Shown: positions 28,590-52,944 of the stretch, in pieces
Numbering within the stretch: position 1 is the stretch's first letter
Layout: each line of letters starts with the position of its first letter
Source of the DNA: Mantamonas sphyraenae STR306
Lineage: Eukaryota; Protista; CRuMs
DNA length: 64,000 bases
Direction of reading: 5' to 3'
NCBI GenBank assembly: GCA_026936335.1
Contig: JAPMXV010000075.1
Span: 146,360-210,359, forward strand
Program-made: the position numbers and the translations under genes
The notes under the pieces: generated by a model
Databases searched by the model: none
Seen by the model: the letters and a program-made list of their open reading frames with translations, nothing else
Told to the model about the DNA's origin: nothing

Positions 28590-29150
28590 GGGTGTGTGTG
28601 TTGTCGACGCGGAATGTGAAGGCGGCGAAGAAGAGGCTGAGCGCTCCTTGTCCTCTATGCGCGAGTGCAACAACGCATATTGCATACAGACAGTTTTGAA
28701 CAGTCATCAGGTAGGGAGGGGCGGGGGTATCGGGGACTTGTGCCCGTGTATAGATGGGATAGAGAGAGAGTCACGGAGGAATCAGGAGAGGCTGACAATC
28801 ATGGGATATCGCAGGAAATATGGGCTTAAACGTACATCAGTGGTTGGAATTGTTGCAGAGCGGGGACCATGGGCGGATTGTGGAAGCTTTGGAGGATCAG
28901 GGAACGGTGAGTAGGCGGAAAGAAATCGGGAGGGCGTTTTGGGTGAGCGTGACGTTGATCGTCGCACCAGAAGAAGGGAAGGAGGGATGGGAGTAGGGTG
29001 GATGTGATGGTGAGTACGCAGGGTGGAACGTGTGTTGACACGGCACACACAGAAATTGGACCTTGCACGTGGGGACCTGGGAGACAAAGAAGCAGCGGCA
29101 CTCGCGCGGGCACTGGCTCAGAACAGCAGCTTGCAGACCCTGGACCTCAA
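28590..29150. repeat. Upstream/exon-1/intron block, near-identical at ~34070-34630; a longer version (from ~28350) recurs diverged at ~50845-51780
   Basis: Shared text such as GAGGCTGAGCGCTCCTTGTCCTCTATGCGCG..CAACGCATATTGCATACAGACAGTTTTGAACAGTCATCAGGTAGGG. Confidence 0.85.
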
Positions 29151-30870
29151 CAACAACACCATCGGGGCAGAAGGCGCCGCAGCACTGGGGCAGGCACTAA
29201 GTGAGAACAGCGGCTTGCAGACACTGATTCTCTGGGACAACGGCCTCGGGGACGAAGGAGCAGCAGCGCTTGGGCAGGGACTGATTGATAACACCGCCTT
29301 GCAGACGCTGGACCTTGAGAACAACAGCATCGGGGACAAAGGCGCAAGAGCAATGGGGCAGGCACTGAGTAGGAACAGCTGCTTGCAGACACTGAACCTG
29401 GGAATCAACTGCATCGGGCCAGAAGGCGCAGCAGCACTGACGCAGGCACTGTGTGAGAACACCACCTTGCAGACGCTGGACCTCGGAAACAACAGCATTG
29501 GGGCAGAAGGCGCAGCAGCGCTGACGCCGGCACTGAGTGAGAACACCGGCTTGCAGACTCTGTACCTTAGTAGCAACAGCATCGGCGACAAAGGAGCAGC
29601 CGCACTGGCGCAGGGACTGAGGGAGAACCAGAACTTGCAGGCACTGAGCCTCTTCTACAACAGCGTCGGAGCAGAAGGAGCGGCAGCACTGGGGCAGGCT
29701 CTGAGTATGAACAGCAGCTTGCAGACACTGAACCTCGGCTGGAACAGTTTCGGGGCGGAAGGCGCAGCAGCACTGGCGCAGGCACTGAGGGAGAACCAGA
29801 GCTTGCACACACTCATCCTCAGCTCGTGCGGCACTGGTGCAGAGGGAGCAGCAGCACTGGGGCAGGCGCTGAGGGAGAACAACAGTTTGCAGACTCTGAA
29901 TTTTGGAAACAACAGTATCGGTGACGAAGGGGCCGCAGCACTGGGACAGGCTCTGAGTAGGAACAGCAGCTTGCGGACACTGTACCTCAGCCTTAACAGC
30001 ATCGAGGACGAAGGAGCAGCAGCACTGGGACAGGCACTGAGTGAGAACAGCTGCTTGCAGAAAATAGACCTCGCAAACAACAGCATCGAGGCAGAAGGCG
30101 CAGTAGCACTGGCGCAGGGTCTGAGCAAGAACAGCAGCTTGCAGACACTGAACCTCAGTACCAACACCATCAGGGCAGAAGGAGCAAAAGCGCTGGCGCA
30201 GGCACTGGGTGAGAACAGCACCTTGCAGATGCTGAGTCTCAGCTTCAATCCTACCGGGGACGAAGGAGCAGTAGCACTGGCTCAGGCATTGAGTGAGAGC
30301 AACAGCTTGCAGACACTTGACCTCGGGAACACCAGCATCAGGACAGAAGGTGCAGCAGCGCTTGCTCAGGCGATGGAGGGCAATCGCTCCTGCTGGAAGA
30401 TTGAAGGCGTTCGCAATGACGCGTTGCAGTCGCTGTTGGAGAGGAACATGGAGAATCACGTGGAGTTTGTGGAGTGTGGGGATGTGGAGACGATGAGAGA
30501 GTTGTGGGAATGGGGTGTGCCTGTGGACACGTTTGCAGGGGATGAGGGGGAGGAGACTGCGCTGGAGAGGGCTGTGAAGGGTGGGGATGAGACGATTGTG
30601 GATGTGTTGCGGGCGTGGGGTGCGACGCCGAGGATGGAAACGGTGGAGATTGTGAGGAAGGGAGGGTGGAGGAAGGCGTGGCATTGGATTGGATGGGGTG
30701 GGCAGGTGGATGAGGCGATGGAGGTGGCGCTGGTGATGAATGGGGAGGAGAGGGAGGCGATGTTTGAATGTGGAGGGATGGAGGCGTATGAACCGACTGC
30801 ACAGTGGATGACACTGCCGGATGAGGTGATGGAGAGGGTGATTGGGTGGATGGGGAGGGGTGGGTGGTGA
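28820..30870 (+). CDS. LRR-ankyrin-C-terminal F-box-like protein, copy 1 (16 LRRs); exons 28820-28906 and 29053-30870
   Basis: Exon 1 MGLNVHQWLELLQSGDHGRIVEALEDQGT, GTGAGT..TTGAC..CAG phase-0 intron, 28-aa repeats NSSLQTLxLxxNxIGAEGAAALAQALSE, ankyrin ETALERAVKGGDETIVDVLRAWGA, terminal WMTLPDEVMERVIGWMG. Confidence 0.88.
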
Positions 30871-32957
30871 TGGCGTCGCGGAATGAAGAAGTTGGTTGAG
30901 TGTGTGGTTGTGAGGGAAATGGGCAAGCAATGAAAACCAGCATGAGGAGTAAAAGGCGGTGCTACACACCCGTGTTTGTTGTTCACCACCTGTACAGACA
31001 GGACCATCGGGGTCCCAGTAATTACGCTCCAAGCACAACCGGCGAGTCCTCTTGCTTGGTAGTGTCGTCACTGCACATGCGGAGAAGGTTCCTCATTTGG
31101 ACACCCCACACACCATGCGCGTTCACTCGTGTTCCATAGCGGGATTGTCCTCTTCTGAGTCTGCCCTCCACCGTCCTCCGTCCCCGTTGTTGGGTGAGGG
31201 AGGGTCGTTGGGATGGGATGGGGGGTTCACCCACCCTCCACCATACCCCTTCCACGTACCCAGTCCCATCTTCTTCGTTGTCATTGTCGTTGTGGTTGTG
31301 GTTGTGATTGCAACTTGGCGCGTTGCACGTCGACGTGGCCACCTGCTTCCTGATGCTGCTACGGTTGTCCCCCTTTCATCCTCCAACCAGCGCCTCCATG
31401 CTGCGTCCGCTTCTGGCTTGCCAAAGCCCATGTCCGATGGACACTGGAAGGGATCCCACAGAACATGTCCCGGGGGGGAGGGGGGGTTCCTGGAGACGCG
31501 CCCACACACTCGCACCCTCCTCACGTCCACCACGCAAACACCCTGTGTTTCTCTTCATGGGTGGATGCACACGTTCTGCGGTTTGTCCATCCCTTTGTTC
31601 TCCCTCTGTGGCGACTTCTCTCTCCTTGGATCGGGGCGAGCAGCGCCGTTTTCACGCGCGTACTTTCCACGTGTCACATACACGCCTGTGCGTGCGTGGC
31701 TTCCCTTTGGCTTCGGACTGGGTTGACCTAGCCTTGTCCCAACTGGTCAAGAGGTTGTTCTCGCGTGCGTGCGAGTTGTGGCTGCAGCCACAGAGGCGAC
31801 TTGAGGGTGCGTCTGAACCGCGAGAACAAGCTGGAGCGCACGGGCCGCCAAAAGCGTGACGTGTGCCACGGAGGACATCCGAGATACGGCTGGGGATGAT
31901 GCCATGGGCCCCTCAGACGTGGAATTGGTGCATCTGTCCGGTTCCAAGGTGTGCTAAGGCGCCCATGGTGTTGAACGTGGCCTCGGTTGCCGGGCGTGTC
32001 GACGGGCGCCTTGGTCGCCGTCTGCCAGAATCCCATCACAGAGGCAGGGAGGACATTCGAACCGACTTTGACGACAGTACGCCACCGCACGTGTGTTTGT
32101 GCATGTGTTGGTGCAACGTCATTCTCACTACTGTTCCACGATGTTGGAGGGGGGCGGGAACTCCGGTGGCTGAAAACGCGCACCTCGGCGGGTGGGTGTG
32201 TGCATGTGTCCCCAGGACCACAACTTCAGTGAGGGTACACACACATACACGGGTCTCCCAATGGACGAAGCTGGTGATGTGTGTTCCCATCTGCGACCAT
32301 TTCAAGTGCGATGTGAAACGCCTCGCTTTTCGGACCCACCAGTGGATGATTGAGAACGTGTGGGTGGCAGAGGCGCCACCAGTGCGGTCGCGACGGATGA
32401 ACGGGTCATGCCAGGCGAAGCTTTGGTCTCTGTTGAGTCTCACGTGCAGCTCCGGGATTTTCCTGACTCGAAGAGGTGGAGAAAAAAGAACGCCGTTCAC
32501 ATTTTGGGAACGGATGATGGACCCCGAACATTATGAGTCAACCCGAAGGTAGCAGCCAAAAGCGCAACTCAACGGAGGAGGAGGACCAACGTGTCAGAGA
32601 AGAATTTTCCTGCCGAGTCTATCACGTGTGTCATGGGTGACATGGTGGACATGGATGCACAGGAGAGAATTCAAGATTCCCGGAGGAGTGGGAGTTGGGA
32701 GTGTGCAGCGTACGGGGAGAGGATACCGGGCGGGAGAAACGGAGCGTGGCGGTGAAGGCGCCGAACGACGCAACGCATCTTGGAATTGGTGACATCGAAC
32801 AGGAATCTCAGGGTAAGTGAGGTGGCTGGGTGGAGAACACACGGCTGGTGGGCTGTTGAGGGGAGGAATGGAAGGGGGCGGTCGCTGTGGGAGGGAGAGT
32901 GGGCGGGTGGTGCCCACGACGCTCACAACGGAGAGCAGACACAGATTGGGTACACAG

Positions 32958-34017
32958 ATGAATACCGATTGGAATGATCTGCTGAAGAACGGGGACCATG
33001 CACAGATTTGTAGTGCACTGGAGGCAGCGGGAGAGGTAGGCTGGGACCGGAACACAAGGAAGAGCGGGAAAGAAGTGGGTGAAGGGCAACAGTGGAGTGT
33101 GTGCTGACACGACACGTGGGCCACAGCGGCTGCGCATTAATTGCATGTATCTAGGGGACGACGAGGCAGTAGCGCTTGCCAAGGCGCTGGGGAAGAACAC
33201 CAGATTGCGGACACTCGACCTGGGCTTCAACAACATTGAGGACGAAGGAGCAACAGCGCTGGGACAGGCACTGAGTGAGAACAGCAGCTTGCAGAGACTG
33301 GACCTCAGGGCAAACAGCATCGGGGCAGCAGGAGCAGGAGCAGTGGCGCACGGACTGAGTGCGAACCGCAGCTTGCAGACGCTGTACCTCTTCAGGAATT
33401 CGATCGGGGCAGCAGGAGCAGCAGCACTGGGGCAGGGTCTGAGTGAGAACAGCAGCTTGCAGACACTGCACCTCGGCTGGAACAACATCGGGGACAAAGG
33501 TGCAGCAGCACTTGCTCAGGCGATAAAGGGCAATCGGTCGTGCTGGAAGATCACCGGCGTTCGCAATGACGCGTTACAGTCGCTGTTGGAGAGGAACATG
33601 GAGAATCACGTGGAGTTTGTGGGGTGTGGGGATGTGGAGACGATGAGAGAGTTGTGGGAGTGGGGTGTGCCTGTGGACACATTTGCGGGAGAGGGGGGGA
33701 CGGAGACTGCGCTGGAGAGAGGGGTGAAGGGAGGGGACGAGGGGTTGGTTGAGGTGTTGCGGGGATGGGGTGCGAAGCCGATGATGGAAACGGTGGAGTT
33801 GGTGAGGAAGGAGGGGTGGAGGAAGGCGTGGCATTGGATTGGGTGGGGTGGACAGGTGGATGAGGCGATGGAGGTGGGGTTGGTGATGAACGGGGAGGAG
33901 AGGGAGGTGATGTTTGAGTGTGGAGGGATGGAGGCGTATGAACCGACTGCACAGTGGATGACACTGCCAGACGAGGTGATGGAGAGGGTGATTGGGTGGG
34001 TGGGGAGGGGATGGTGA
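32958..34017 (+). CDS. LRR-ankyrin-F-box-like protein, copy 2 (5 LRRs); exons 32958-33035 and 33127-34017
   Basis: Exon 1 MNTDWNDLLKNGDHAQICSALEAAGE, GTAGGC..CTGAC..CAG intron, same C-terminal module as copy 1. Confidence 0.85.
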
Positions 34018-34305
34018 GTGGGGAGGGGAGGTGCGGAGAGGCGAATGTAGGTGGACAGTTTTTGAACAGTGATATGTGTGTGTGTGTGAGGTGGACGCGG
34101 GATGTGAAGGCGGCGACGAAGAGGCTGAGCGCTCCTTGTCCTCTATGCGCGGGTACAACAACGCATATTGCATACAGACAGTTTTGAACAGTCATCAGGT
34201 AGGGAGGGGCGGGGGCATCGGGGACTTGTGCCCGTGTATAGATGGGATAGAGAGATAGTAACGAGAGGAATCAGGAGAGGCTGACAATCATGGGATACAG
34301 GAAAT

Positions 34306-36430
34306 ATGGGCTTAAACGTACATCAGTGGTTGGAATTGTTGCAGAGCGGGGACCATGGGCGGATTGTAGAAGCTTTGGAGGATCAGGGAACGGTGAGTTG
34401 GCGGAAAGAAATCGGGAGGGAGTTTTGGGTGAGCGTGACGTTGATCGTCGCACAGGGAAGGAGGGATGGGTGTAGGGTGGATGTGATGGTGTATACGCAA
34501 GATGGAACGTGTGTTGACACGGCACACACAGAAATTGGACCTTGCACGTGGGGACCTGGGAGGCAAAGAAGCGGTGGCACTTGCGCGGGCACTAGCTCAG
34601 AACAGCAGCTTGCAGACCCTGGACCTCGCAGACAACCCCATCGGGGTAAAAGGCGCAACAGCACTTGGGAAGGCACTGAGGGAGAACAGCGGCTTGCAGA
34701 CACTGGACCTCAGCCACAACAGCATCGGGGCAAAAGGCGCAGCAGCATTGGGGCAAGCACTGTGTGAGAACATCAGCCTGCAGACGCTGGTCCTCAAAAA
34801 CAACAGCATCGGGAAAGAAGGAGCAGCAGCACTGGGGCAAGGACTGAGTGAGAACAGTACCTTGCAGACACTGAACCTCGGAAAAAACAGCCTCGGGGCA
34901 GAAGGCGCAGCAGCACTGGCAAAGGTACTGGGTGAGAGCAGTAGCTTGGAGACACTGAATCTCGACAGCAACAGGATCGGGGCAGAAGGAGCAGCAGCCC
35001 TGGGGCAGGCACTGAGGGAGAACCAGAGCTTGCAGACACTGGGTCTCACCAAGAACAGCATCGGGGCAGAAGGCGCAGCCGCGCTGGGGCAGGCACTGAG
35101 GGAGAACCAGAGCTTGCAGACACTGGGTCTCACCAAGAACAGCATCGGGGCAGAAGGCGCAGCCGCGCTGGGGCAGGCATTGAGTGAGAACAGCAGCTTG
35201 CAGAAACTGGGTATCAGCGACAACAGCATCGGGGCAGAAGGTGCAGGCGCGCTGGGGCAGGCACTGAGTGAGAACAGCAGCGTGCAGAATCTGGATATCA
35301 GCCGCAACGGCATCGGTGGAGAAGGAGCAAAAGCTCTGGCGCGGGCACTGAGTGAGAAAAACAGCTTGCAGTTTCTGGAGCTCTCTAGCAACAGGATCGG
35401 GGCAGACGGAGCAGCAGCACTGGCGCAGGCACTGGCTGAGAGCCGCAGCTTGCAGATACTGGACCTCGGCTGGAACAGCATCGGGACAGAAGGTGCAACC
35501 GCACTTGGGCAGGCACTGAGTGAGAACAACAGCTTGCATACACTGATCCTCAGCCGCAACAGCATCGGGGCAGAAGGAGCCGCAGCACTGGCGCAGGCAC
35601 TGAGTGAGAACAGCAGCTTGCAGACACTGAACCTCAGTACCAACACCATCAAGGCAGAAGGAGCAGCAGCACTGGGGCAGGCACTTTGTGAGAACCAGAG
35701 CTTGCAGAGACTGAACCTCGGAAACAACAGCATCTTGGCAGAAGGAGCCGCAGCACTGGCCCAGGGACTGGGGAAGAGCAGCAGCTTGCAGACCCTGAAC
35801 CTTAGTACCAACAGCATCAAGGCAGAAGGAGCAGCAGCACTGGGGCAGGCACTTTGTGAGAACCAGAGCTTGCAGACACTTTACATCAACTTCAACAGCA
35901 TCGCGGACAAAGGAACAGCAGCACTGGCCTTGGCGATGGAAGTCAATCGGTCGTGCTGGAGGATCGATGTCGTTGGCAATGGAGCTTTGCGGTCGCTGCT
36001 GGAAAGGAACATGGAGAATCACGTGGAGTTTGTGGAGTGTGGGGATGTGGAGAAGATGAGAGAGTTGAGGGAGTGGGGTGTGCCTGTGGACACATTTGCG
36101 GGAGAGGGGGGGACGGAGACTGCGCTGGAGAGAGCTGTGAAGGGTGGGGATGAGGAGATTGTGGAAGTGTTGCGGGCATGGGGAGCGAAGCCGAGGATGA
36201 AAACGGTGGAGATGGTGAGGAAGGAAGGGTGGAGGAAGGCGTGGCATTGGATTGGATGGGGTGGGCAGGTGGATGAGGCGATGGAGGTGGCGTTGGTGAT
36301 GAATGGGGAGGAGAGGGAGGCGATGTTTGAATGTGGTGGGATGGAGGCGTATGAACCGACTGCACAGTGGATGACACTGCCGGATGAGGTGATGGAGAGG
36401 GTGATTGGGTGGGTGGGGAAAGATGTGTGA
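34306..36430 (+). CDS. LRR-ankyrin-F-box-like protein, copy 3 (17 LRRs); exons 34306-34392 and 34532-36430
   Basis: Exon 1 peptide is identical to copy 1, the LRR string is different, and the ankyrin and TLPDEVMERVIGW end are the same. Confidence 0.88.
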
Positions 36431-36434
36431 ATTG

Positions 36435-37505
36435 TTCCGTTCATTCAAGGCGGTGGTGTTTGGAGGAGGAGGGCAAGGGATTGGAGAGGCGTTGAAGAGT
36501 GGAATGAATGGAAGGTGATGTGGGGTGATGCGGCCAATGAGGGTGTGCAGTGTCGTTGGGTTGGAGTTTGGGCAGTCAAGGGATCGTGTGGGAGAAGGGA
36601 GTGACGGCATGGGTGACAATGGCGCTGATGGTGGGTTGCACCTGCCTGGAGATGAGGTTGTGGCATGGTGATGGGAACGAGGGAGGCCAACACACAGCCG
36701 CTAACAGAGCCTCTGGTCGCTTTGACAGTCGTCTCTGGGTGTTCCTTCTCTGTGAAGTGGATACCATGGGACTGTCGCTGATGATGCATTGGCCTTTGGT
36801 GACACCGTGGCTGTATGGATGACACCAGCGAAGTAGAAACTCCGCCTGTGGGAGGATCAACGCACACAAAACCTGCCCTGTGTCGGCGCACAGCCCTCGT
36901 TGGATCCTAAGACCAAGCTTGTAGACGAGTCCACGGGAAACACACGCACAGACGCAGTTTCGTGTTTGGGGTGATTTTGGTGGAGAGCGGCTGGTTGTTG
37001 GCCATGTCGACAATGGTCGGAAAGTGGCGAAAAGTGGAATGAGGGTCATTGGGGTGTGGTTGATGTGTGGAGGGCAGAGACCGAGGCTGAGGGCATGGGA
37101 CGGCCTGTGGTGCGAGCAGGGGGGCGGCAAAGGTGCGGGTACTCGGCCACCGCCTGAAACCAGCTGCGTGAGTTTCTGCGACACTGCTCACGAATGCACA
37201 GCCTGACTGTGGTAAAAGTGTGCTTGGGAAGTGTGTGGGTGACTACACACAGGTGCAAGAGGTGGGCGTGGTGATCGAGGGGGTGTGTGGTCCGTGGGAG
37301 GGCGGTTTGTGGCGCAGGAAGGCGGCGAGGTGCGGCTGGGCTGGCAAGGCGACAAGCAAAAACGACGCCACGACCACCACCAGGCACATTTTTCATCGAA
37401 TTTGGGGAACTTGGCGCAGAGGTGGAATGGGAGGATGAGGCCTGTTGCGTGTGTGGGAGGAGGATGTGTCTGCGACAAAATCACCTCCGGGTGGCAAGGG
37501 GAGAG
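36435..37505. repeat. ~1.1-kb spacer duplicated at ~49460-50585
   Basis: Long near-identical stretches, e.g. GAAGTGGATACCATGGGACTGTCGC..GATGACACCAGCGAAGTAGAAACTCCGCC and CAGGCACATTTTTCATCGAATTTG. Confidence 0.88.
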
Positions 37506-38034
37506 GTCATGGGGCCGCAGTGCAGCAAGGTGGGCGATGACGCAGACTCAAGAGAAGGAAGCAGGTGGAGAGTCAGCAGTGTCATACGCAGCAGATGCCA
37601 GTGGGGTGGGAGAGCGTGCGCTTGTCAAAGCACAACAAACACAACTGACAAAAGGAGATGGACGAACAAGGTGAGTTGACGACGTAGTGGGGTCGATGTG
37701 TTGTTTGCCATTGGTTGGTGGGTGTGTGTTGGGACAGCGTGCAACCAGCTCTTCCGTTTTGGCGTGAGGAAGGAGGCCGGTTGGCGCGTGAGAACCTGGT
37801 GGCGAGGATCGTCGTGCTGCCCCCCAACGCACCATAGCAGGCAACGCTTGGGGTGCACAGAGTACTTGGCCAGTGCAGCAGCAACATGCGCCGCAGCTAA
37901 CAACCGGCACATGCTCACAGATTCAGACTCTGAAGGTATGGAGACCATGCAGAGGAGAAAGGGAGCTGGGCAGAGGGAAAGTTGGTGCACACACGCTCAC
38001 AACGGGCAAAGCAGGCGAAGTGAACATCCTGAAA

Positions 38035-39779
38035 ATGGATGATGATGACTGGGCGGCGTTGCTGCGGAGTGGGGATCATGAACGGATTTGTCGGGCACTG
38101 GAGGCAGAGGGAGAGGTGGGTTGTGACTGGGACGCGTGGCCGTGTTGCACGTCAAGAAGCGGATAAAGGGAAACTATGGAGTGTGTGTACTGACACGTGG
38201 AACACAGTGTTTGTGTATTCGTAGCCAGTTTCTGGGTGACAATGAGGCAGCCGCACTGGCGCAGGCACTGTGTGGGAAGTGCAGCTTGCAGACACTGGAC
38301 CTCAGTGACAACAGTATTGGGGACGAAGGAGCAGCAGCACTGGCGCAGGCACTGAGTGAGAACACCAGCTTGCAGACACTGAAGCTTGGTTCCGGCAGCA
38401 TCGGGAACTTAGGAACAACGGCACTTGCGCAGGCACTGATTGAGAACAGCAGCTTGAAGACTCTGCAAATCAGCACCAACAGCATCGAGGACGAAGGAGC
38501 ATCCGCACTGGGTCAGGCATTGTGTGAGAACAACAGCTTGCAGACTCTGGATCTCAGCCACAGCAGCATCGGTGGCAAAGGAGCGGCAGCAGTGTTCCAG
38601 GCCCTGAGTTTGAACAGCAGCTTGCAGACGCTGATCATCAGCTGGGATGGCATCGAGGCAGAAGGAGACGCAGCACTGGGGCAGGCTCTGAGTGAGAACA
38701 GCAGCTTGCTGACATTGGACCTCATCGACGACAGCATTGGGGACGATGGAGCAGCAGCACTGGCTCAGGGACTGAGTGCGAACAGCAGCTTGCAAACTCT
38801 ATACGTCGGCCACAACTGCATCGGGGACGGAGGAGCAGCAGCACTGGCTCAGGGACTGAGTGAGAACACCAGCTTGCAGACACTGGACCTCATCAACAAC
38901 TGCATCGGGGACGATGGAGCAGCAGCACTTGCTCGAGCATTGAGTACGAGCAGCAGCTTGCAAACACTATACCTCTGGAAAAACAGCATCGGGGACGATG
39001 GAGCAGCAGCACTGGGGCAGGCACTGAGTGAGAACAGCAGCTTGCAGGCTCTGGACCTCAACAGCAACAGTATCGGGGCAGAAGGAGCAGTAGCACTGGG
39101 GCAGGCACTGAGTGAGAACAGTAGCTTGCAGACTGTGGAACTCAGCTACAACAAAATCGGGGTCGGAGGAGCAATAGCACTGGCGCAGGCACTCAGTGAG
39201 AACAGGAGCTTGCAGAAACTGCACCTCAGAGACAACAGCATTGGTGGAGAAGGAGCAGCGGCACTGGCGGAGGCGATGCGTGGCAATCGGTCGTGCTGGA
39301 GCATCGTTTATGACCACGATCGGGCTTATCAGTCGTTGTTGGAGAGAAATAGGAAACATCACGCAGAGTTTGTGGAGTGTGGGGATGCGGTGAGGATGGC
39401 TGAATTGAGGAAGTGGGGTGTGCCTGTGGACACCTTTGCAGGGGAGAGTGGGAAGGAAACTGCGCTGGAGCGAGCAGTGAAGCGAGGGGACGAGAGGATT
39501 GTGGAGGTGTTGCGAGCATGGGGTGCGACGCCGAGGACGAAAACGGTGGAGATGGTGAGGGAGGAAGGGTGGAGGAAGGCGTGGCATTGGATTGGGTGGA
39601 GAGGACAGGTGGATGAGGCGATGGAGGTGGCATTGGTGATGAATGCGGAGGAGAGGGAGGTGATGTTTGAGTGTGGAGGGATGGAGGAGTATGTGGAGGA
39701 AGGAGGGTGGGAAGGGTGGGTGACACTGCCAGATGAGGTGATGGAGAGGGTGATTGGGTGGGTCGTGGTGGCTGGGTGA
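38035..39779 (+). CDS. LRR-ankyrin-F-box-like protein, copy 4 (13 LRRs); exons 38035-38115 and 38208-39779
   Basis: Exon 1 MDDDDWAALLRSGDHERICRALEAEGE, GTGGGT..CTGAC..CAG intron, C-terminus MEEYVEEGGWEGWVTLPDEVMERVIGW. Confidence 0.86.
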
Positions 39780-39854: not shown

Positions 39855-41211
39855 ATGGACTGGAATCACCTGCTGGATTCCCCCTCCGACCCATTGTCTA
39901 TTGAAGAGGCACTGGCACACGCTGGGAAAGTACGCTGAATCGCATTCCCCCGTTGCTGCTGCGCAAGGACCTTGCCTTACTCGCCTCCACCCCACCCCCG
40001 CTCTCAAGTCGCTCTCACTGCGGCAATGGCAGCTCACAGACACCCAAATCGCCTCTTTGGCATCATTTGGCATTGCCGGAAACACCACCCTCCAAGTCCT
40101 GGACCTCACACGGAGTGGAGTAGGCCCTCACGGCGCAACCGCCCTTGCCAAGGCCCTCACCGCCAACACAACCGTCCACACGCTAAAGTTGAACAGCAAT
40201 GTCATCGAAAGCAAAGGGTGCATTGCAATCATCGAGTCGTTGAACCACAACAACTCTCTGCTCTCCCTCAGTCTCCTGAAAACCAACCTCGATGACGAGT
40301 CGTTCCGTCTGGATGCAAACAACACGCTGAACGAGCTGAACGTCGCCTTCAACACCGTTGGCGACGCCTTTGCCGCCTCGTTGGCCAGTTGACTTTCTGA
40401 AAACACTTCTCTGTGCATCTTGACCCTCACCCACAACCAAATCAGCTGCCAAGGCGCAGAGGCCCTCGCTGCAGCGCTCACACACAACGTCAGGCTGACA
40501 GACCTTTCACTTGCCCACAACCACATCGAACGCAAAGGCGCTGTTGCCTTGGCCACTGCTCTGTTGGCAAATAGCACCCTGCAGTCTCTGAATCTCTACC
40601 ACAACAGCATCGATGACGACGGAGCCATCGCCATCGCCACAGCCCTGCATTCAAACAGCACTCTGCAGATTCTTGATTTGGCCAAGAATCCCATCAACGA
40701 CTTGGGGCAAACGGAATTGACGACTGCTTTGACCAACAACACGACTTGCTTGCGCATCGACTGCTGCAAGAGGGTGTTCAACTTGACACAAGCGAGGAAG
40801 TTCACAACAGCTGCACAGCGTGGCGATATTGCCACCATGGGCGAGTTGAGAGAGTGGGGTGTCGCTGTGGACGCTCGGGCAGGCGAGCACGGGCAAACCG
40901 CCTTGCAGCTGGCCATGGAAGCCAGACAGGATGCTGTGGTTGCACAACTGAGGCGTTGGGGGGCACAGGCGACGTATTCATTCACAAAGTCGATCGGGGG
41001 TTCAAACTGGGAATGGCGGGAACCGTGGCATTGGGTGTTGGGCACCGTGGTGCAAGACACCGCATTGGAAGTCGTCCTGGCCATGAACGCTGAGGAGCGG
41101 GATGTGATGTTTGAAGCAGGAGGGATGGAAGGGTATGTTCCCACGGCCCTGTGGAGCACCCTTCCAGACGAGGTGATGGAACGTGTGGCAACGTGGATCG
41201 GCCATCTGTGA
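39855..41211 (+). pseudogene. Divergent LRR-ankyrin-F-box-like copy 5 (~9 LRRs) with one in-frame TGA at 40390-40392; intron 39930-40008
   Basis: Exon 1 MDWNHLLDSPSDPLSIEEALAHAGK. ORFs 39754-40392 and 40420-41211 are in the same frame (LAS*LSENTSL). Ends WSTLPDEVMERVATWIGHL. Confidence 0.75.
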
Positions 41212-43479: not shown

Positions 43480-45259
43480 TCACCCTCCCTTGGCCAGCCA
43501 CTCCAACACCCTCTCCATCAGCTCATCCGGCACCGTCCACCAATCACACGTCGCCTCATACCCTCCCATGCCACCACACGCAAACATCACCTCCCTCTCC
43601 TCCCCATTCATCACCAGCGCCGTCTCCATCGCCACATCCATCACACAACCCCATCCAATCCAATGCCACGCCTTCCGCCACCCTGCCTCCCTCACCATCT
43701 TTACCGTTTCCATCCTTGGTTTCGCACCCCACGCTCGCAACACCTCGACCACTGCCTCATCCTCGCGTTGCACAGCACTCACCAACGCAGTCTCCTCCTT
43801 GCCTCCTCCATCCCCTGCACACGTGTCCACAGACACGCCCCAAGCCAGCAGCTCCTCCATCGCCTTGACATCTCCTCGTCCAGCACTCATCACGAACGAA
43901 TGGGCCATGTCACGATTTCTTGCTGTGGTCGCACTCTGCCCGATGCCGTCGATTTCCCAGCAGCTCCTGTTCTCCTCCAGTGCCTCGGCCAGCGCCTTTG
44001 CTCCCTGTGCACCCATTCTATTGTTTCTCAGGAACAGTCTCTGCAGGCTGCGGTTCCTCTCCAAAGCTCTGGCCAGAGCCACGGCCCCGTCCGGGCCGAC
44101 GCCGTTCCTGACAAGTTTCAGCTTCTGCAAACTGCTGCTTCCCTCCAGCGCTTCCGCCAGCACTGTGGCCCCATGCTCTCCGACGCTGTTGTTGTTCAGG
44201 TCCAGTGTGTGCAAGCTGACGTTCTTCTGCAGTGCCCTGGCCAGAGCCGCGGCCCCTTCCGGCCCGATTCCGTTTCTCCCGAGTGTCAGCGTCTGCAAAC
44301 TGCTGCTTCCCTCCAGCGCTTCGGCCAGCACTGTGGCTCCTTCCGAGACGATGGCGTTGCGATCGAGGTTGAGCTCCTGCAGGCTGGTGTTTCCTTGCAG
44401 CCCCTTGGCCAGTGCTGCAGCCCCTTCTGCCCCGATCCAGTTGGCGCTGAGGTCCAGTGTCTGCAAACAGTGGTTTCCACCCAATGCGTTGGCCATGGCT
44501 GCTGCTCCGTCTGCGCCGACCACGTTGTCGCCGAGCGTGAGCATCTCCAAACTGCAGCTCTGTGCCACAGCGGCGGTGGCCAACGCGGTTGCTCCTCTTG
44601 GGCCGATGTTGTTGTGGTTGAGGTTCAGTGTGCGCAACCCGTGATTCTCTTCCAGTGCAACGGCCAGTGCGCACGCCCCACGGGTGCCGATGTCGCAGTT
44701 GGTGAGGTCCAGTGAGGTCAGGTGCACACACACAACCAAAGCCTGTGCAAGTGCAGCAGCTCCTTCTGCGCCAATGCTGTTCGCCCCAAGATGCAATCCC
44801 TGCAAAGAAGTATTCTGTGACAATCCTTGGGCAAGTGCAGCTGTCCCCTCGGCCCCTATGCAGTTGCCTTTCAGATTCAGTGTGCGCAAACACGTGTTTG
44901 TTGCCAGTGCGGCGGCCAATGCCACCGCTCCGTCATCGCATGTGCTTTGCAAAGACAAGTCCAGTGTTTGGATGGTTGTGTTCGCCTCCAGTGCTTTGGC
45001 CAGTGCGCCTGCTTCGTGGACACCGATTCTGTTGTGAAAAAGGGTCCAACACATCTGTGGCCGCGGCAGACTTTTCGACACGTCTTTGCGCAAGATCCAA
45101 TTCCTGGTTTTGACGACGCGTGTCAGCAGCACGGCACGGCCATTGCACGCTCTCGTTTCCTCGCCTTGCCTTTCCTGCAGCCTCCAACGCGGAACAAATC
45201 TGCTTCTCGTCGCCGTCGCGCAACAGGGTGGTCCAGTCGACTGCCCCCTGTGTGGTCAT
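43480..45259 (-). CDS. LRR-ankyrin-F-box-like protein, copy 6 (~13 LRRs, inverted); exon 1 45259-45170, probable GC-AG intron 45169-45104; apparent +1 frameshift near 45043 or an alternative acceptor
   Basis: Exon 1 MTTQGAVDWTTLLRDGDEKQICSALEAAGK is homologous to the other first exons. ORF 43480-45132 carries LRRs, ankyrin and WWTVPDELMERVLEWL. Confidence 0.78.
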
Positions 45260-45825: not shown

Positions 45826-47446
45826 ATGAACTGGTCGAGGAACGAGTGGCGCAATTTGCTGAATGGCGGGGATCATGAACGGATTTGTAGCGCACTGGAG
45901 GCAGTGGGAGAGGTGGGTTGCGACTGGACGCAGAGGGATGTTTGGCACGTCAGGAAAAATGAAGCGCAAAAATGGAGTGTGTGCTGACACGTGGAGCACA
46001 GATGATGAGTATTGAATTCGCGAACCTCGGAGGTTATTGGACAGTAGCACTGGCCAAGGCGCTGGGGACGAACACAAGTTTGCAGACACTGAATCTCTGC
46101 AACAACAGCATCGGGGCAGAAGGGGCAGCCGCACTGGCGCAGGCACTTTGTTTAAACAGCAGCCTGCAGACACTGAATCTCTACAACAACGGGATCGGGG
46201 CAGAAGGGGCAGCAGCACTGGCGCAGGCACTGGGTGGGAACAGCAGCTTGCAGAGACTGAATCTCAGCGCCAACGGGATCGGGGCAGAAGGGGCAGCAGC
46301 ACTGGCCAAGGCGCTGGGGACGAACACAAGTTTGCGGATACTGAACCTCAGCGTCAACGGGATCGGGGCAGATGGAGCAACGGCACTGGCGCAAGCACTG
46401 AGTGAGAACAGCAGCTTGCGAACACTGAACTCTTTGGCAACAACGACATCGGGCAACGAAGGCGCAGCTGCAACTCGCGCAGGCACTGAGGGAGAACAGC
46501 AGCTTTGCGGACACTACTCTCTCGGCGCAAACAGCATCGGGGGCAGAAGGAGCAGCCGCACTTGGCGCAGGGGATTGAGGGAGGACAGCAGCGTTCAGAT
46601 TCTGCAACTCGACAGCAATCGCATCGGGGCAGAAGGAGCAGCTGCACTTGCGCAGGCGCTGAGTGTTAACCGCAGCTTGCAGAATCTGGACCTCACCGGT
46701 ACCGGCGTTGGCGAAGAAGGTGCAACAGCACTGGCGCAGGCGCTGAGGGAGAACAGCAGCTTGCAGATACTGTACCTCAGCGACAACAGAATCGGGGACG
46801 AAGGAGCAGCAGCATTGGCAAAGGCAATGCAAGGCAATCGATCGTGCTGGACATCGAATGGGCTTCGCAATGACACTTTGGAGTCGCTTTGGAGAGAAAC
46901 AAGGAGCAGCACGAGGAGTTTGTGGAGTGTGGAAATGTGGAGAGGATGGCTGCGTTGAAGGAGTGGGGTGTGCCTATGGACACGTTTGCAGGGGAGCACG
47001 GAAGGACCACGGCGCTGGAGCGAGCAGTTGAGGATGGGGATGATGAGATTGTGGAGGTGTTGCGGGGATGGGGTGCCAAGCCGAGGATGAGGGACGGAAG
47101 AGATGGTGCGGAAGGTAGGGTGGAGGAAGGCGTGGCATTGGATTGGATGGGGTGGATTGGTGGAGGAGGCGATGGAGGTGGCATTGGTGATGAATGGGGA
47201 GGAGAGGGAGGTGATGTTTGAGTGTGGTGGGATGGAGGAGTATGTGGAGGAGGGAGGGTGGGAAGGGTGGGTGACGCTTCCAGATGAGGTGATGGAGAGG
47301 GTGATTGGGTGGGTGGGGAGGGGTGCTGCACCGGCAAGGGTCGCTGTGGGGAGGTCAGGGGAGACGAGGAAGCGAGGGAGAGATGAGGTGGAAGAGGAGA
47401 GGAGGAAGCAGAGGTGGAGAAGAGGCAACGTGTGGAGGAGGAGTGA
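45826..47446 (+). pseudogene. LRR-ankyrin-F-box-like copy 7 (~10 LRRs) with several frameshifts (real or sequencing) and a basic/acidic tail; intron 45913-46001
   Basis: Exon 1 MNWSRNEWRNLLNGGDHERICSALEAVGE. The module is split over ORFs starting at 45972, 46889 and 47103. Confidence 0.78.
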
Positions 47447-47852
47447 ACAGTGGGGTGTGATCAGCAAGGAGGAATGGACGTCGGACGCAGGAGAGGAGGA
47501 AAGGGCAGGAGGTTGGCAGGAAGGTAGGGAGGATCTTGGACGACGGGGATGGCAATGTGGGGAGAATGTACATTCAACACACAGATAGCAATGCCAGTGC
47601 AATGGAAGGGGGTGGTTGCACTGGCAGTCCATTGCGAGGGAAGGAAGGTTTGGAGGCCTTTTGCAGCGGTACGGTGTTGGCAAGCGCAGCAGCGCACAAC
47701 GCATTTAGGAGCTGTCACATTCTTACGGGACCGCAGTGTAGGTAGATTTGGGTGAATAGAGAAGTGTGGGATGGAGAGAGGGAGGAGGAGGACGGCCGTG
47801 GAAGCGAAGGAGAGGAAACGGTGGTGCACACACGCTCACAACGGGCAAGCAG

Positions 47853-49439
47853 ATGAGCTCGACAAACATGGATGATTGGGTGGCTTTGCTGCAGAGCGGG
47901 GATCATGCACGGATTGGCAGTGCTCTGGAGGCAGAGGAAGAGGTGTGTTGCGCCCGGAACGCGGACGGAATGGTTGTGTCACGTCCAGAAGCGAGTGGGC
48001 GAAGGGAAAGAATGTGTGCTGACACGTGGAGCACGGAAGTTGATCATTGTTCACAAGCAGTTGGGAGACAATGAGGCAGTAGCACTGGCCAAGGCGCTGG
48101 GAAAGAATAGGAGCTTGAGGAAATTGTCGTTGAACAAGAACAGTATCGGGGACGGGCAGCAGCACTGGCGCAGGGCTTAGTGAATACAGCAGCTTGCAGA
48201 AACTGGAACTAAGCGGCAACAGAATCGGGGACGAAGGGCAGCAGCACTGGCGCAGGCACTGTGTATGAACCGCAGCCTTCAGACACTGTACCTCAACGAC
48301 AACAGCATCGAGGCAGAAGGCGCATCAGCACTTGCGCAAGCACTGATTGCCAGCAACAGCTTGCAGAAACTCTTTCTCGGGCAACAACAACATCGGGGCA
48401 GAAGGGGCAGCAGCGTTGGCACAGGCAATTTGCGAGAACTCCAGCTTGCACTCACTGAACCTCTGGGGCAACAGCGTCGGTGCAGAAGGAGCAGCAGCGC
48501 TGGCGCAGGCAATTTTGCGAGAACTCCAGCTTGCACTCACTGAAGCTCTGGGGCAACAGCGTTGGTGCAGAAGGAGAGCAGCAGCGCTGGCAAAGGCACT
48601 GTGTGTGAACAGCAGCTTGCAGACACTCTTTGTCTACACCAACAACATCGGAACAGAAGGAGCAAAAGCGCTGGCCCAAGGCACTGTGTGAGAACCGTAG
48701 CCTGCGTACACTGGGTCTCAGCCTCAACAATATCGGAACAGACGGTGCAACAGCACTGGCGCAGGCACTGAGTGTGAACAGCAGCTTGCAGAAGCTGGAA
48801 GTTAACGACAACAGCCTCGGGGATGAAGGAGCAGCAGCACTGGCGCAGGCGCTGGCTGAGAACAACAGCTTGCAGTCGCTGGACCTCAGCAGGATCAGCA
48901 TCATGGATGAGGGAGAAGCAGCACTGACAAGGGCAATGGAAGGCAATCGGTCCTGCTGGAGGATCTACGGCGTTTTCGATACCTCTTTGTGGTCACTGTT
49001 GGAGAGGAACAGGAAGCATCACGTGGAGTTTGTGGAGTGTGGGGATGTGGAGAGGATGAGAGAGTTGATGGAGTGGGGGGTGCCTGTCGACACGTTTGCA
49101 GGGGAGAGGGGGAGGAAGAATGCGCTGGAGAGAGCAGTGACGCGAGGGGATGAGAGGATTGTGGAGGTGTTGCGGGAGTGGGGTGCAAAGCCAAGGATGG
49201 AAACGGTGGAGATGGTGAGGAAGGAAGGGTGGAGGAAGGCGTGGCATTGGATTTGGTGGGGTGGACAGGTGGATGGGGCAATGGAAGTGGCGTTGGTGAT
49301 GAATGGAGAGGAGAGGGAAGTGATGTTTGAGTGTGGAGGGATGGAGGAGTATCTGGAGGAGGGAGGGTGGGAAGGGTGGGTGACGCTTCCAGATGAGGTA
49401 ATGGAGAGGGTGATTGGGTGGGTGGGGAGGGGAGAGTGA
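47853..49439 (+). pseudogene. LRR-ankyrin-F-box-like copy 8 (~11 LRRs), frameshifted in the LRR region; acceptor changed from CACAG to CACGG with an in-frame AAG 3 nt downstream
   Basis: Exon 1 (MSSTN)MDDWVALLQSGDHARIGSALEAEEE. LRR fragments lie in several frames, and the C-terminal module is intact in ORF 48630-49439. Confidence 0.78.
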
Positions 49440-51457
49440 GGTGGGGAGGGTGTGGGAATGGATGCGTTCATTCAAGGCGGTGGTTTTTGGAGGAGGAGGG
49501 CAAGGGATTGGAGAGGCGTTGAAGAGTGGAATGAATGGAAGGTGATGCGGAGTGTGATACGGTCAAAGAGGGTGCAGTGTTGTTGGGTTGGGGTTGGGCA
49601 GTCAAGGGGTCGAGTGGGAGAAGGGAGTGACGGCATGGGTGACAATGGCGGGGATGGTGGGTTGCACCTGCCTGGAGATGAGGTGTGGCATGGTGGTGCG
49701 AACGAGGGAGACCAAACACACAGTGGCTCATAGGGCCTCTGGTCGCTTTGTCAGTCATCTCTGGATGTTCCTTCTCTGTGAAGTGGATACCATGGGACTG
49801 TCGCGGATGATGCATTGGCCTTTGGTGACACCGTGGCTGTATGGATGACACCAGCGAAGTAGAAACTCCGCCTGTGTGAGGATCAACGCACACAAACCCT
49901 GTCCTGTGTCAGCGCACAGCCCTCACTGGATCCTAAGACCATGCGTGTAGTCGAGTGCATGGGAAACACACGCGCAGAGGCAGTTTCGTATTTTGGGTGA
50001 TTTTGGTGGAGAGCGGCTGGTTGTTCACCATGTCGACAATGGTCGAAAAGTGGCGAAAAGTGGAATGAGGGTCAGTGGGGTGTGGTTGATGTGTGGAGGG
50101 CGGAGACCGAGGCTGAGGGCATGGGGTGGCCTGTGGTGCGAGCAGGGCGGCGGCAAAGGTGCGGGTGCTCGGCCACCGCCTGACACCAGCTGCGTGAGTT
50201 TCTGCGACACTGCTCACGAATGCACAGCCTGACTGTGGTAGAAGTGTGCTTGGGAAGTGTGTGGGTGACTGCACACAGGTGCAAGAGGTGGGCGTGGTGA
50301 TCAAGGGGGTGTGTGGTCTGTGGGAGGGCGGTTTGTGGCGCAGGAAGGCGGCGAGGTGCGGCTGGGCTGGCAAGGCGACAAGCAAAATCGACGCCACGAC
50401 CACCACCAGGCACATTTTTCATCGAATTTGAGGAACTTGGTGGAGAGGTGGAATGGGAGGATGCGGGCCCAGAGAACGGAGGATGAGGGCGTGGAGGGGC
50501 CTGTGGCGTGTGTGGGAGGCGGAGTTGATGGAGGCCGGATTGCCACCTTGCGACAAAATCACCCCAGGGTGGCAAGGGAGGAGGGTATGGGATGGATGGT
50601 GGTGAAGAGGGGTGGGGGAAGGAGGGACGGTTGGGGTAGCATGTGTGTGTGCATGGACGCAGCCATCCGCACACGCGGGCCGAAGAGCAGGAAGATGGGC
50701 GGCGACTCAGATTCGGGAAGAGGAAGCAAGGTGAAGAGTCATTCGTGTCGCAAGAATGAATTTGGCGGACGCCATTGGCATTGCATGGGCGCATGGGTGA
50801 ACACAGCAGTGGCAAGCAGGAGGAGGACGAGGCCAACGGTTGTTTCTTCCATGCTGGTGGCACTGATGGACAAAGACAGAACGTTGTGTGAAGCACTCTG
50901 GGGAGTGATAGCACGGCATGGATGCACTGGGCAGAGTGAACGAGGGCATGCATGGGGCGTGGAGGCAGACAACCGCCAAAGGAAGATGGGCAAGTCGTGG
51001 CAGGTGCTGCTGGGAAGGACGAGGGAGGAATGTGTGGAGGATAGTAGAGTGAAGAGGGAAGGTGTGGTTCATTCATGTGTGGTGGTGGTGGTGGATGGAG
51101 GAAGAGGGTCAGGAGTGGACTGGAGGCATGGTGGGGCGCACAAAGGGTGTGGAACGCCGTTCTACTGTGGACGTTGTGGCGTAGTTGGGTAAAATGTAGG
51201 TGGGCAGTTTGTGAACAGTGATTGGGTGTGTGTGTTGTGAACGCGGGATGTGAAGGGGCGAAGAAGGAACAGAGTGCTGCTTTTCCTCTGTGCGGAGGTG
51301 CATCCAACGCATATTGCACACACACACTTTAGAGCAGTCATTGGGTAGGGAAGGGCGGGGGAATCGGGGACTTGTGCGCTTGTGAGGGTGGGATAGGGAG
51401 AGAGGCACGAGAAGGAGGAATCAAGAGGGGCTGACCTCGTGGAGTACCGCAGGAATT

Positions 51458-52944
51458 ATGGGCTTGGAAAGAGAAGAATGGGTGGAATCGTTGCAGAGTG
51501 GGGACCATGGGCGGATTGTGGAAGCTTTGGAGGCTCAGGAAGGGTGAGAGTTGACGGAAAGAAATCGGGAGGGAGTTGGTGAGCGTGACGTGCGTCGCAC
51601 GGGGAAGGGGAGGAGGGATGGGGGTAGGGTGGGTGTGATGGTGAGTAGGAAGGGTGGGACGTGTGTTGACACCTCGAACACAGAAATTGGACCTTTGCAA
51701 TTGGTACTTGAGTGACCACGAAGCAGCGGCACTTTCGCAGGCACTTGCTCAGAACAGCAGCTTGCAGACACTGATCCTCAGCCACAACAGATTCGGGGCA
51801 GAAGGCGCAGCAGCTCTGGGGCGGGCACTGGGTGAGAACAGCAGCTTGCAGACACTGTCCCTCGGCTCCAACAGCATAGGGTATGAAGGAGCAGCTGCGC
51901 TGGTGCAGGCACTTTGTGTGAACAGCGGCTTGCAGGCACTGGACCTCGGCGACAACAGCATCGGGGCAGATGGAGCAGCAGCACTGGCGCAGGCACTGAA
52001 GAAGAACAGCAGCTTGCAGACACTGTTCCTCGGCGACAACAGCATTGGATATGAAGGAGCAGCTGCACTTGCGCAGGCGCTGTGTGTGAACAGTAGCTTG
52101 CAGACACTGGACCTCGGAGGCAACAAAATCTGCGACGAAGGAGCAGCAGCACTTGCTCAGGCGCTGGCTGAGAACTGCAGCTTGCAGATACTGTACCTCG
52201 GACGCAACAAAATCTGCGACGAAGGAGCAGCAGCACTTGCTCAGGCGCTGGCTGAGAACTGCAGCCTGCAGGCACTGTTCCTTGGTAGCAGCATTGGGGA
52301 CAAAGGAAAAGCATCACTGGTGCAGGCAATGCAAGGCAATCGGTCGTGCTGCATTATCCACGGCGTTGAAAATGATGCGTTGCTGTCACTGTTGGAGAGG
52401 AACAAGGAGCAGCACGAGGAGTTTGTGGAGTGTGGGGATGTGGAGAAGATGGCTGAATTGAAGGAGTGGGGTGTGCCTGTGGACACGATTGCAGGTAGTC
52501 AAGGTGGTACACTGCGCTGGAGGTAGCAGTTGAGGATGGGGATGATGAGATTGTGGAGGTGTTGCGGGAGTGGGGTGCAAAGCCGAGGATGAAAACGGTG
52601 GAGATGGTGAGGAAGGAAGGGTGGAGGAAGGCGTGGCATTGGATTGGGTGGGGTGGACAGGTGGATGAAGCGATGGAGGTGGCATTGGTGATGAACGGGG
52701 AGGAGAGGGAGGTGATGTTTGAGTGTGGAGGGATGGATGAGTATGTGGAGGAGGCAGGGTGGAAGGGTGGGTGACACTGCCGGATGAGGTAATGGAGAGG
52801 GTGATTGGGTGGGTGGGGAGGGGAGCTGCTCCGGCAAGGGTCGCTGTGGGGAAGTCAGGGGAGACCAGGAAGCGAGGGAGGGATGAGGTGGAGGAGGAGG
52901 AGGAACCGGAGGTGGAGAAGAGGCAACGTGTGGAGGAGGAGTGA
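51458..52944 (+). pseudogene. LRR-ankyrin-F-box-like copy 9 (8 LRRs) with single-base frameshifts and a basic/acidic tail
   Basis: Exon 1 MGLEREEWVESLQSGDHGRIVEALEAQ; exon 2 starts at 51684. The module is split over ORFs starting at 51654, 52553 and 52759. Ends ETRKRGRDEVEEEEEPEVEKRQRVEEE. Confidence 0.78.

Follow-up and report, generated by a model that had tools for sequence, protein, structure and literature searches.

Innate recognition in plants and animals rests mainly on fast-evolving repertoires of leucine-rich repeat (LRR) proteins, as does adaptive recognition in jawless fish; much less is known of them in unicellular eukaryotes. In LRRs of the ribonuclease-inhibitor type (RNI-type), the x residues of the strand and the loop that follows line the concave ligand-binding face, as in the complexes of ribonuclease inhibitor (RI) with ribonucleases. 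The variable lymphocyte receptors (VLRs) of lampreys and hagfish start from an incomplete germline gene that is completed somatically from cassettes; they have 24-residue LRRs and cysteine-rich caps, and are secreted or glycosylphosphatidylinositol-anchored. At chromosome ends, ectopic recombination speeds diversification. Among fungi, the nwd and het-e genes of Podospora, related to the NOD-like receptors (NLRs), carry WD, ankyrin (ANK) or tetratricopeptide (TPR) repeats of high internal conservation that are reshuffled and have positively selected surface positions; no LRR motifs were found in fungal NLRs, and the internal repeat identity reported for nwd is ~85% in amino acids (PMC4986451). 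The LRR-ROCO proteins of brown algae are reported to be ROCO GTPases diversified by exon shuffling and candidate immune receptors (PMC3341825, PMC11378527). Here, these systems are compared with a locus of the protist Mantamonas sphyraenae STR306 (CRuMs), located on contig JAPMXV010000075.1 of assembly GCA_026936335.1. The window, that is, the whole stretch of 64,000 nucleotides that was analysed and whose numbering is used throughout, contains a group of tandem LRR genes with three hypervariable codons in each repeat. The reading favored here, which we regard as probable rather than firm, is that nine paralogous members of a lineage-restricted gene family are clustered here in a subtelomere and form a selection-driven recognition repertoire.

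The nine tandem paralogues (G1 to G9; Table 1) occupy 29.0-52.8 kb of the window at a spacing of 0.5-6 kb, with a single copy, G6, on the minus strand. They share the same order of parts: a short N-terminal cap (N-cap), 4-16 LRR units of 28 residues (84 bp) and a conserved C-terminal domain of ~165 amino acids, nine copies of which were retrieved by tblastn with the post-repeat sequence. The period of 84 was found by Tandem Repeats Finder (TRF), and nhmmer with an 84-bp profile recovers 88-89 units, grouped upstream of the C-terminal domains; the total reaches ~100 with the N-caps and the divergent G5. The initial annotation had counted roughly 100 units over 29053-52350; their number and the stretch that they fill (29.1-52.3 kb) were correctly given, but they belong to nine genes instead of one array. 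Four or five copies look intact, G1-G4 and the divergent G6 having complete open reading frames (ORFs) from the N-cap through to a conserved stop; G5, G7, G8 and G9 are broken or likely pseudogenes. Some of the breaks in these four copies could be assembly errors, and G5 is likely a pseudogene, or else a gene with an unrecognised intron. The long reverse-strand ORFs that run across the arrays are a by-product of the stop-free repeat.

The repeats have the 28-residue LxxLxLxxN pattern followed by a helix that characterizes RNI-like LRRs of 28-29 residues, the class found in RI and NLRs, and match Pfam LRR_6 at 183-249 bits (E = 1e-56 to 1e-77), far above the cut-off of 23.4. The nearest solved sequences are the LRR of NOD2 (E = 5e-49), RI-like proteins, RI itself (E = 1e-34 to 1e-38), the LRRs of NLRP5 and other NLRPs, and axonemal LRR proteins. 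A single-sequence AlphaFold2 (AF2) model of G2 is usable in its LRR part only, where the predicted local distance difference test (pLDDT) is 75-88; strand and helix alternate there, and this part superposes on the NOD2 LRR at 3.0 Å over ~170 columns. The modelled strand corresponds to unit columns 15-20 (L-x-L-x-x-N) and the helix begins at column 25 and ends at column 9 of the following unit, so columns 16, 18 and 19 are predicted to lie in the β-strand of the concave face. Judging from the general structure of RNI-type LRRs and the secondary structure of the model, the residues in these columns may recognise a ligand. The central NACHT or NB-ARC domain that is joined to the LRRs in NLRs was not found by Pfam in any of the window ORFs scanned, G1, G3 and G4 having LRR families only, and nothing precedes the LRRs except an inferred exon of 38 nt and a conserved flank without coding sequence. 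F-box, signal-peptide-like and transmembrane features were likewise absent from the scans made of the family, and Pfam detected no LRRNT or LRRCT caps.

The variability of the repeat was studied on the 64 in-phase, stop-free 84-bp units of G1-G4 and G7-G9, which also served for the selection analyses. The highest amino-acid entropies are observed at unit columns 16, 18 and 19, the x of LxLxxN (2.90, 2.90 and 3.55 bits, with 12-15 residue types), and tryptophan, tyrosine and phenylalanine are nearly restricted to them. The corresponding unit bases (46-48 and 52-57) are the same in every in-phase unit. Columns 7, 8, 10, 21 and 24 come next (2.0-2.3 bits), and together with columns 14 and 28 they make up a set at 1.6-2.3 bits in which ω, the ratio of nonsynonymous to synonymous rates, is ~1-1.5. 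The twelve tetrads quoted in the initial annotation as examples of variable x positions (DLNN, ILWD, DLEN, NLGI, YLSS, SLFY, NLGW, VLKN, GLTK, YLWK, HLRD and YLFR) are all present; the x positions are indeed the most variable, and the variability is not spread evenly over the unit. Yet it is peaked at these positions and not confined to them as had been claimed, since seven other columns are moderately variable. According to the model, columns 21 and 24 belong to the strand-to-helix loop and columns 7, 8 and 10 to the helix end and the next loop, so the variation would not all be on the concave face. The canonical x positions 2 and 3 of LxxLxL are rather conserved, with glutamine in column 13 in 86% of units and threonine in column 14 in 69%.

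The rest of the unit, hereafter the scaffold, had been described as highly conserved even at many synonymous sites. Among units that share the consensus residue of a column, the choice of codon is far more uniform than the codon usage of the window predicts: Leu-12 is TTG in 60/63 units (background 21%), Leu-17 CTC in 49/55 (18%), Glu-25 GAA in 44/46 (27%) and Ser-7 AGT in 27/28 (12%), and GCA is used at four alanine columns. Such position-specific codons point to common descent or homogenisation, not to codon bias. The codon uniformity is real, but the conservation is only relative: the mean identity between units is ~74% in DNA and ~61% in protein, and their fourfold synonymous diversity is 0.33. 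The tree of the units is star-like.

Selection on the x codons was evaluated on trees of the 64 units built with IQ-TREE or FastTree, by a fixed-sites MG94xHKY codon likelihood in which all sites share a single synonymous rate. Taken as one class, the three x codons evolve at ωX = 2.98 when the tree is based on all sites, at 3.42 when it is based on the scaffold only and at 2.88 under F3x4, and the remaining codons at 0.54-0.58; the likelihood-ratio test (LRT) statistic against ωX = 1 is 68-88. When sites are tested singly, ω significantly exceeds 1 in no columns other than 16, 18 and 19 (2.2, 3.1 and 4.0); in seven columns it does not differ detectably from 1, and in the structural columns it is far lower. 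Ten bootstrap trees give ωX of 2.5-3.1 (LRT 48-77), and the intact genes G1-G4 alone give 2.55 (LRT 37). In twelve data sets simulated with ωX = 1 on the same tree and analysed anew on re-inferred trees, the estimates were 0.92-1.24 and the LRT was at most 2.5; the signal is therefore not a product of errors in trees of short sequences. A tree-free comparison gives a pairwise diversity of 0.587 for codon positions 1 and 2 of the x codons, against 0.329 for the fourfold silent sites of the scaffold, that is, a Jukes-Cantor ratio of 2.6 (bootstrap 2.2-3.3), and the closest unit pairs differ at ~10% of their scaffold bases versus ~40% of their x-codon bases. With a shared synonymous rate, the site-wise dN/dS that the initial annotation had proposed as a check is thus not ≤1 at the x codons.

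Several points weigh against diversifying selection as the explanation of this pattern. The excess of ω over 1 depends on the silent sites of the scaffold as a neutral yardstick: if the x codons are given their own synonymous rate, this rate (α) becomes 1.56, which is not significantly raised (p = 0.21), and β/α decreases to 1.9 (p = 0.046). Naive Nei-Gojobori (NG86) ratios for columns 16, 18 and 19 are 0.60, 0.88 and 2.14, values that result from the saturation of the x codons, as multi-hit codons inflate the apparent silent differences. Moreover, repeats recombine, which violates the tree model and can inflate site-model tests, and the whole comparison is between paralogous repeats within a single genome rather than between alleles. 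Finally, the seven further columns vary at neutral-like rates, some of them outside the strand, and four of the nine copies are broken. The diversifying selection on the concave face suggested by the initial annotation is consequently supported with these caveats: ω is 2.5-3.4 at the x codons and ω = 1 is rejected (LRT 37-88), but the support is weaker when these codons have a synonymous rate of their own.

The arrays themselves have been remodelled. Two neighbouring units of G3 (u06 and u07) differ by 1 nt, which indicates a recent unit duplication, and TRF detects higher-order periods of 252 bp in G9 and 168 bp in G6. Units resemble others from their own gene only slightly more than they resemble those from other genes (15.7 vs 16.8 differences per 75 scaffold bases, p = 0.002). 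G1 and G3 are 96% identical in their 5' flanks, 93% in their N-caps and 91% in their C-terminal domains, but their arrays are not collinear: they align by position at u01, u13 and perhaps u02, and the other positional pairs differ at 12-21 of the 75 scaffold bases. The arrays are therefore mosaics that turn over faster than their flanks, which is consistent with unequal crossing-over and conversion in the subtelomere.

Under the favored reading, all the repeats would derive from one ancestral 84-bp unit; since they still have position-specific codons in common, the scaffold is not at synonymous saturation. The arrays would change through duplication, loss and shuffling of units, as suggested by the 4-16 units per copy, the unit pair with a 1-nt difference and the non-collinear arrays of genes whose flanking parts are 91-96% identical. 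Three residues per repeat (positions 5, 7 and 8 of LxxLxLxxN) would gain amino-acid changes 2.5-3 times faster than silent sites, owing to positive selection for new surfaces after duplication. The family may then constitute a germline repertoire of binding specificities, for example to sense or neutralise foreign or fast-evolving proteins, and its subtelomeric position would favor the turnover of this repertoire.

Other scenarios may explain parts of these observations. One possibility is that the x positions merely drift under relaxed constraint and are saturated, while the silent sites of the scaffold are slowed by gene conversion, unequal crossing-over or constraint, in which case ω > 1 would be an artefact of the yardstick. 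The x-codon distance is nearly independent of the scaffold distance (Spearman 0.07), suggesting saturation, the seven other exposed columns are at ω ~1, the x class is borderline with its own synonymous rate and the position-specific codon conservation fits homogenisation or shared ancestry. Nevertheless, homogenisation affects whole tracts, so the differences between x codons would vanish too unless selection kept them, and the Leu-17 codon, in the midst of the x codons, is as conserved as the remaining scaffold. The x sites are also clearly faster than the neutral-like columns (ω of 2.2-4.0 vs 1.0-1.5), and the null simulations at ωX = 1 never exceeded 1.24. Relaxed constraint alone is accordingly judged unlikely. 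Alternatively, the genes could encode ordinary structural or scaffolding LRR proteins, such as the axonemal or cytoskeletal RNI-like ones, with a fixed partner for each repeat, old fixed differences and no repertoire. The sequences and the fold do match axonemal LRR proteins well (LRRC34, DRC5 and LRRP), as they match NLRs and RI. Housekeeping LRR proteins, though, are usually single-copy and conserved across eukaryotes, and this locus has nine tandem copies with 4-16 repeats, broken members, a recent unit duplication, ω > 1 at strand positions and a C-terminal domain for which no full-length relative was found among 1.84 billion cluster representatives; a purely structural role is improbable.

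The initial annotation had also considered a diversification targeted to the x codons, of which the data give no indication. Leu-17 has a hypervariable codon on either side (16 and 18), yet its silent position is conserved to the same degree as the other silent sites (CTC being kept in 49/55 units). The x codons show no significant increase in synonymous rate, and Pfam and Rfam scans of the window revealed neither an enzyme nor an element that would suggest a diversifying machinery; together, these results favor selection on amino acids over a local mutator. In a programmed version of such diversification, the cluster and its broken copies would be an archive of cassettes from which expressed genes are rebuilt, by gene conversion or mutation of the x codons in a clonal lineage, as in lamprey VLRs or the mosaics of trypanosome VSGs. 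The subtelomeric location, the intermixing of intact and broken copies, the mosaic and non-collinear arrays between near-identical flanks and the 96% identity of the G1 and G3 5' flanks despite a dS of 0.23 in their C-terminal domains would all be expected. Yet several germline copies are complete ORFs that would not need to be assembled, and the synonymous rate, the conserved silent site inside the hypervariable patch and the lack of a diversifying enzyme or element in the window, from a static assembly that cannot reveal somatic change, argue against it; this is very improbable, and the least likely of the explanations considered. Nearly as speculative, and very unlikely, is a protist anticipatory receptor system in which frequent gene conversion exchanges repeat cassettes among the LRR genes of the chromosome end, whether intact or broken, so that clonal populations would have differing mosaic arrays and pre-diversified binding faces. 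If true, this would be a germline or somatic generator of LRR repertoires, joined to an orphan ankyrin-like signalling domain, in a lineage that is neither animal nor plant.

The C-terminal domain evolves quite differently from the x codons. Between paralogues, its dN/dS is 0.23-0.52, which means that the domain is real and under purifying selection, and its dS of 0.23-0.45 implies that the gene copies are not very recent. Pfam gives no match to it. A search of 1.84 billion cluster representatives with a profile built from seven paralogues retrieved generic ankyrin-repeat proteins only (2709 matches, E down to 7e-26), over profile positions ~35-95, and no full-length relative. The domain may contain a degenerate ankyrin-like core, to which Pfam ankyrin profiles give no match; the AF2 model built from the seven sequences (pLDDT 45) is too poor for a fold search. 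A word-index protein search with the domain returned nothing, and its profile found no relatives in viral and metagenome contigs. Similarly, metagenomes gave no exact match to a 21-nt word of the scaffold that the window contains 7 times, the products of G3 and G6 have no exact match on record, and a literature search for an earlier description of a subtelomeric RNI-type LRR family yielded nothing relevant. The C-terminal ~50 amino acids of G1, G3 and G6 (e.g. 36281-36427) give sub-threshold matches to Pfam PRiA4_ORF3 (PF07929; E of 0.004-0.1), in the same profile region in all three.

A TGA in the same alignment column ends six of the copies, shortly after LPDEVMERVIGW. This segment resembles the first helix of an F-box, and an F-box/LRR (FBXL) identity was considered, but the protein stops 4-6 residues later at the conserved stop, and the tails of three paralogues match no Pfam F-box family at E ≤ 10. 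The segment and the N-terminal exon were also considered as the halves of a split or permuted F-box, a possibility eliminated by the conserved stop, by a TGA that the splice phase would create and by the absence of a Pfam F-box match. The same conserved stop and splice-phase TGA exclude that neighbouring genes are spliced in series or form one giant gene.

The upstream flanks of the copies fall in two related classes, both of which have a GGGGAYCATG start, a GTGAGT- or GTGGGT-type donor ~38 nt further on and an AG acceptor just before the main ORF. From these signals we infer a gene model in which an intron of ~50-115 nt separates a short exon 1 from a large exon 2; the searches were made with exon 2. 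In G3, the exon-1 homologue (34355-34392, corresponding to 28869-28906 in G1) contains an in-frame TAG (ATG GGC GGA TTG TAG), and the ATG at 34502 in its exon 2 sits where G1 and G9 have GTG. The start codon thus looks as if it had shifted between these paralogues. As no signal-peptide-like start is present in the inferred models, a cytosolic product is presumed. The 5' flanks of G1 (28592-29013) and G3 (34080-34492) are 96% identical although their C-terminal domains have a dS of 0.23, and the G9 flank is 77-80% identical; the near-identity of the first two suggests either a recent 5' gene conversion or a constrained promoter or 5' untranslated region. A 1-kb element is present just 3' of G3 (36429-37440) and just 3' of G8 (49456-50466), the two being 93% identical and their ORFs without Pfam match. 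It could be a mobile element or a piece of a duplicated segment.

Table 1 Coordinates of the LRR gene copies and their parts in the window
Feature	Positions	Strand	Description
G1	28869-30870	+	Intact; main ORF 29014-30870; 15 LRR units 29098-30357; Pfam LRR_6 E = 1e-75
G1, 5' part	28869-28906	+	Inferred exon 1 (ATG in ACCATGG context); GTGAGT donor 28907; exon 2 from 29022
G1, 3' part	30358-30867	+	C-cap and C-terminal domain; stop 30868-30870
G1, hypervariable patch of u01 (example)	29143-29154	+	Codons 16, 18 and 19 (unit bases 46-48 and 52-57) around conserved Leu-17 CTC
G2	32998-34017	+	Intact, short copy; exon-1 homologue ATG 32998; main ORF 33040-34014; N-cap
G2, LRR units	33172-33507	+	4 units
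G2, C-terminal domain	33508-34014	+	
G3	34502-36430	+	Intact; 642-aa ORF with its own ATG at 34502
G3, LRR units	34577-35920	+	16 units
G3, C-terminal domain	35921-36427	+	
G4	38078-39779	+	Intact; exon-1 homologue ATG 38078; ORF 38127-39776
G4, LRR units	38253-39260	+	12 units
G4, C-terminal domain	39261-39776	+	
G5	~40000-41211	+	Divergent; ~9 LRRs and C-terminal domain (46% identical to that of G3); in-frame stop 40390-40392
G6	43480-45132	-	Divergent; 550-aa ORF intact; ~12-13 LRRs from 45006 down to 43996
G6, C-terminal domain	43995-43483	-	64% identical to that of G3
G7	45963-47321 (feature span from 45875)	+	Broken; nine LRR units, units 5-7 with indels (87, 87 and 85 bp); C-terminal domain frameshifted
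G8	48082-49439 (feature span from 47905)	+	LRR part broken; ten LRR units, four of 83 or 85 bp, giving three frame changes
G8, C-terminal domain	48921-49436	+	Intact
G9	51507-52821	+	Broken; exon-1 homologue ATG 51507; ORF start 51645; 7 LRR units 51729-52313
G9, C-terminal domain	52314-52821	+	Split across three frames

The setting of the cluster is a chromosome end. The 3' end of the window consists of (AGGGTT)22.7 at 63865-64000, a TTAGGG telomere, and is preceded, after a gap of ~1.1 kb, by a subtelomeric tandem array of 69/139 bp with ~15 copies (61715-62754), both detected by TRF. The LRR cluster (28.9-52.8 kb) ends 11 kb from the chromosome end; its tandem paralogues are thus within tens of kb of the telomere repeat, as is characteristic of subtelomeric multigene families. 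The GC content of the window is ~58% throughout, and outside the cluster Pfam identifies polycystin channel, TRP-like, Patched sterol-sensing domain (SSD), TIG, ephrin-receptor-like, SPRY and GT61 domains in its ORFs. The telomere and these eukaryotic domains in long ORFs indicate the end of a chromosome in a eukaryote that is rich in GC and poor in introns. Neither the Rfam scan nor the tRNA scan of the 64-kb window gave a match.

On the coding strand, the GC skew is strongly positive across 28000-54000 (0.2-0.4) and changes sign, to -0.31, along an ORF of the minus strand at 26-28 kb. This ORF (26277-28343, -), which has a weak BACK match (E = 2e-4), and a plus-strand ORF with a below-cut-off SPRY match (56820-57872; E = 1.6e-4) flank the cluster; BACK and SPRY are both found in ubiquitin-ligase adaptors. 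Further out, one ORF on each side of the cluster (3857-8380, +, and 58586-60733, -) joins typical non-RNI LRRs to a TRP-like membrane domain (PF06011). A polycystin-type channel ORF (9805-11922) is 27-31% identical to vertebrate PKD2L1 and has its best overall match in protist transcripts (35%). Between 12745 and 25584, an uninterrupted ORF of 4,279 codons matches only TIG, ephrin-receptor-like and DUF7630 domains and has the appearance of a giant intronless gene for a surface-like protein.

The closest resemblance in repeat class is with RI and the LRRs of NOD2 and the NLRPs (LRR_6), from which the family otherwise differs: RI is a single conserved gene without C-terminal domain and NLRs carry NACHT and effector domains, whereas the Mantamonas family is multi-copy and subtelomeric and has an orphan, possibly ankyrin-like C-terminal domain; the common fold is indicated by the sequences and the G2 model. 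In their evolution, these genes rather recall the NLR and resistance (R) gene clusters of plants, which similarly consist of tandem paralogues with variable repeat numbers, pseudogenes, and dN > dS and hypervariability on exposed residues of the LRR strand. Nevertheless, the ORFs scanned here have no NB-ARC or NACHT domain, the repeats have the 28 residues of the RNI type instead of the 24 usual in plants, hypervariability is limited to positions 5, 7 and 8, with conserved residues at positions 2 and 3 (Q, T), and the cluster is subtelomeric in a non-plant host. With VLRs, the family shares a diversity concentrated on the predicted concave face and a locus that contains many LRR cassettes; contrary to VLRs, its germline genes are complete, its repeats are 28-residue RNI repeats without LRRNT or LRRCT caps (Pfam) and a single assembly gives no sign of somatic change. 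Brown-alga LRR-ROCO genes are reportedly also an expanded, fast-shuffling LRR repertoire in a lineage of protist grade, but the repeats of the present family all belong to one exon and there is no ROC-COR domain. The likeness to subtelomeric contingency families (trypanosome ESAG8/LRRP and VSG, Plasmodium var), variable multigene families with pseudogenes that adjoin a telomere, rests on gene arrangement and not on surface exposure, expression switching or parasitism, and the domain architecture differs.

The closest systems in mode of evolution are the fungal NLR-like genes, with which the family shares repeat similarity at the DNA level within and between paralogues, reshuffling, variable repeat number and a few positively selected surface positions; here, however, the repeats are LRRs, there is no NOD domain and internal identity is lower (~61% in amino acids and 74% in nucleotides vs ~85% in amino acids). 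The family is new and its principle known: it would work like these systems, but is not an NLR, as it has no NOD domain, nor a VLR, as its germline genes are complete and its repeats are 28-residue RNI repeats, nor an FBXL protein, as no F-box is found. The same evolutionary signature, positive selection on the LRR strand, appears in a different setting that combines RNI repeats without a nucleotide-binding domain, an orphan domain and a recombination-prone chromosome end. If the signal holds in population data, the locus would be a tractable example of how a protist recognition repertoire arises and persists, and would extend to LRRs the mode of conserved repeats with hypervariable sites that is known from the fungal WD, ANK and TPR receptors.

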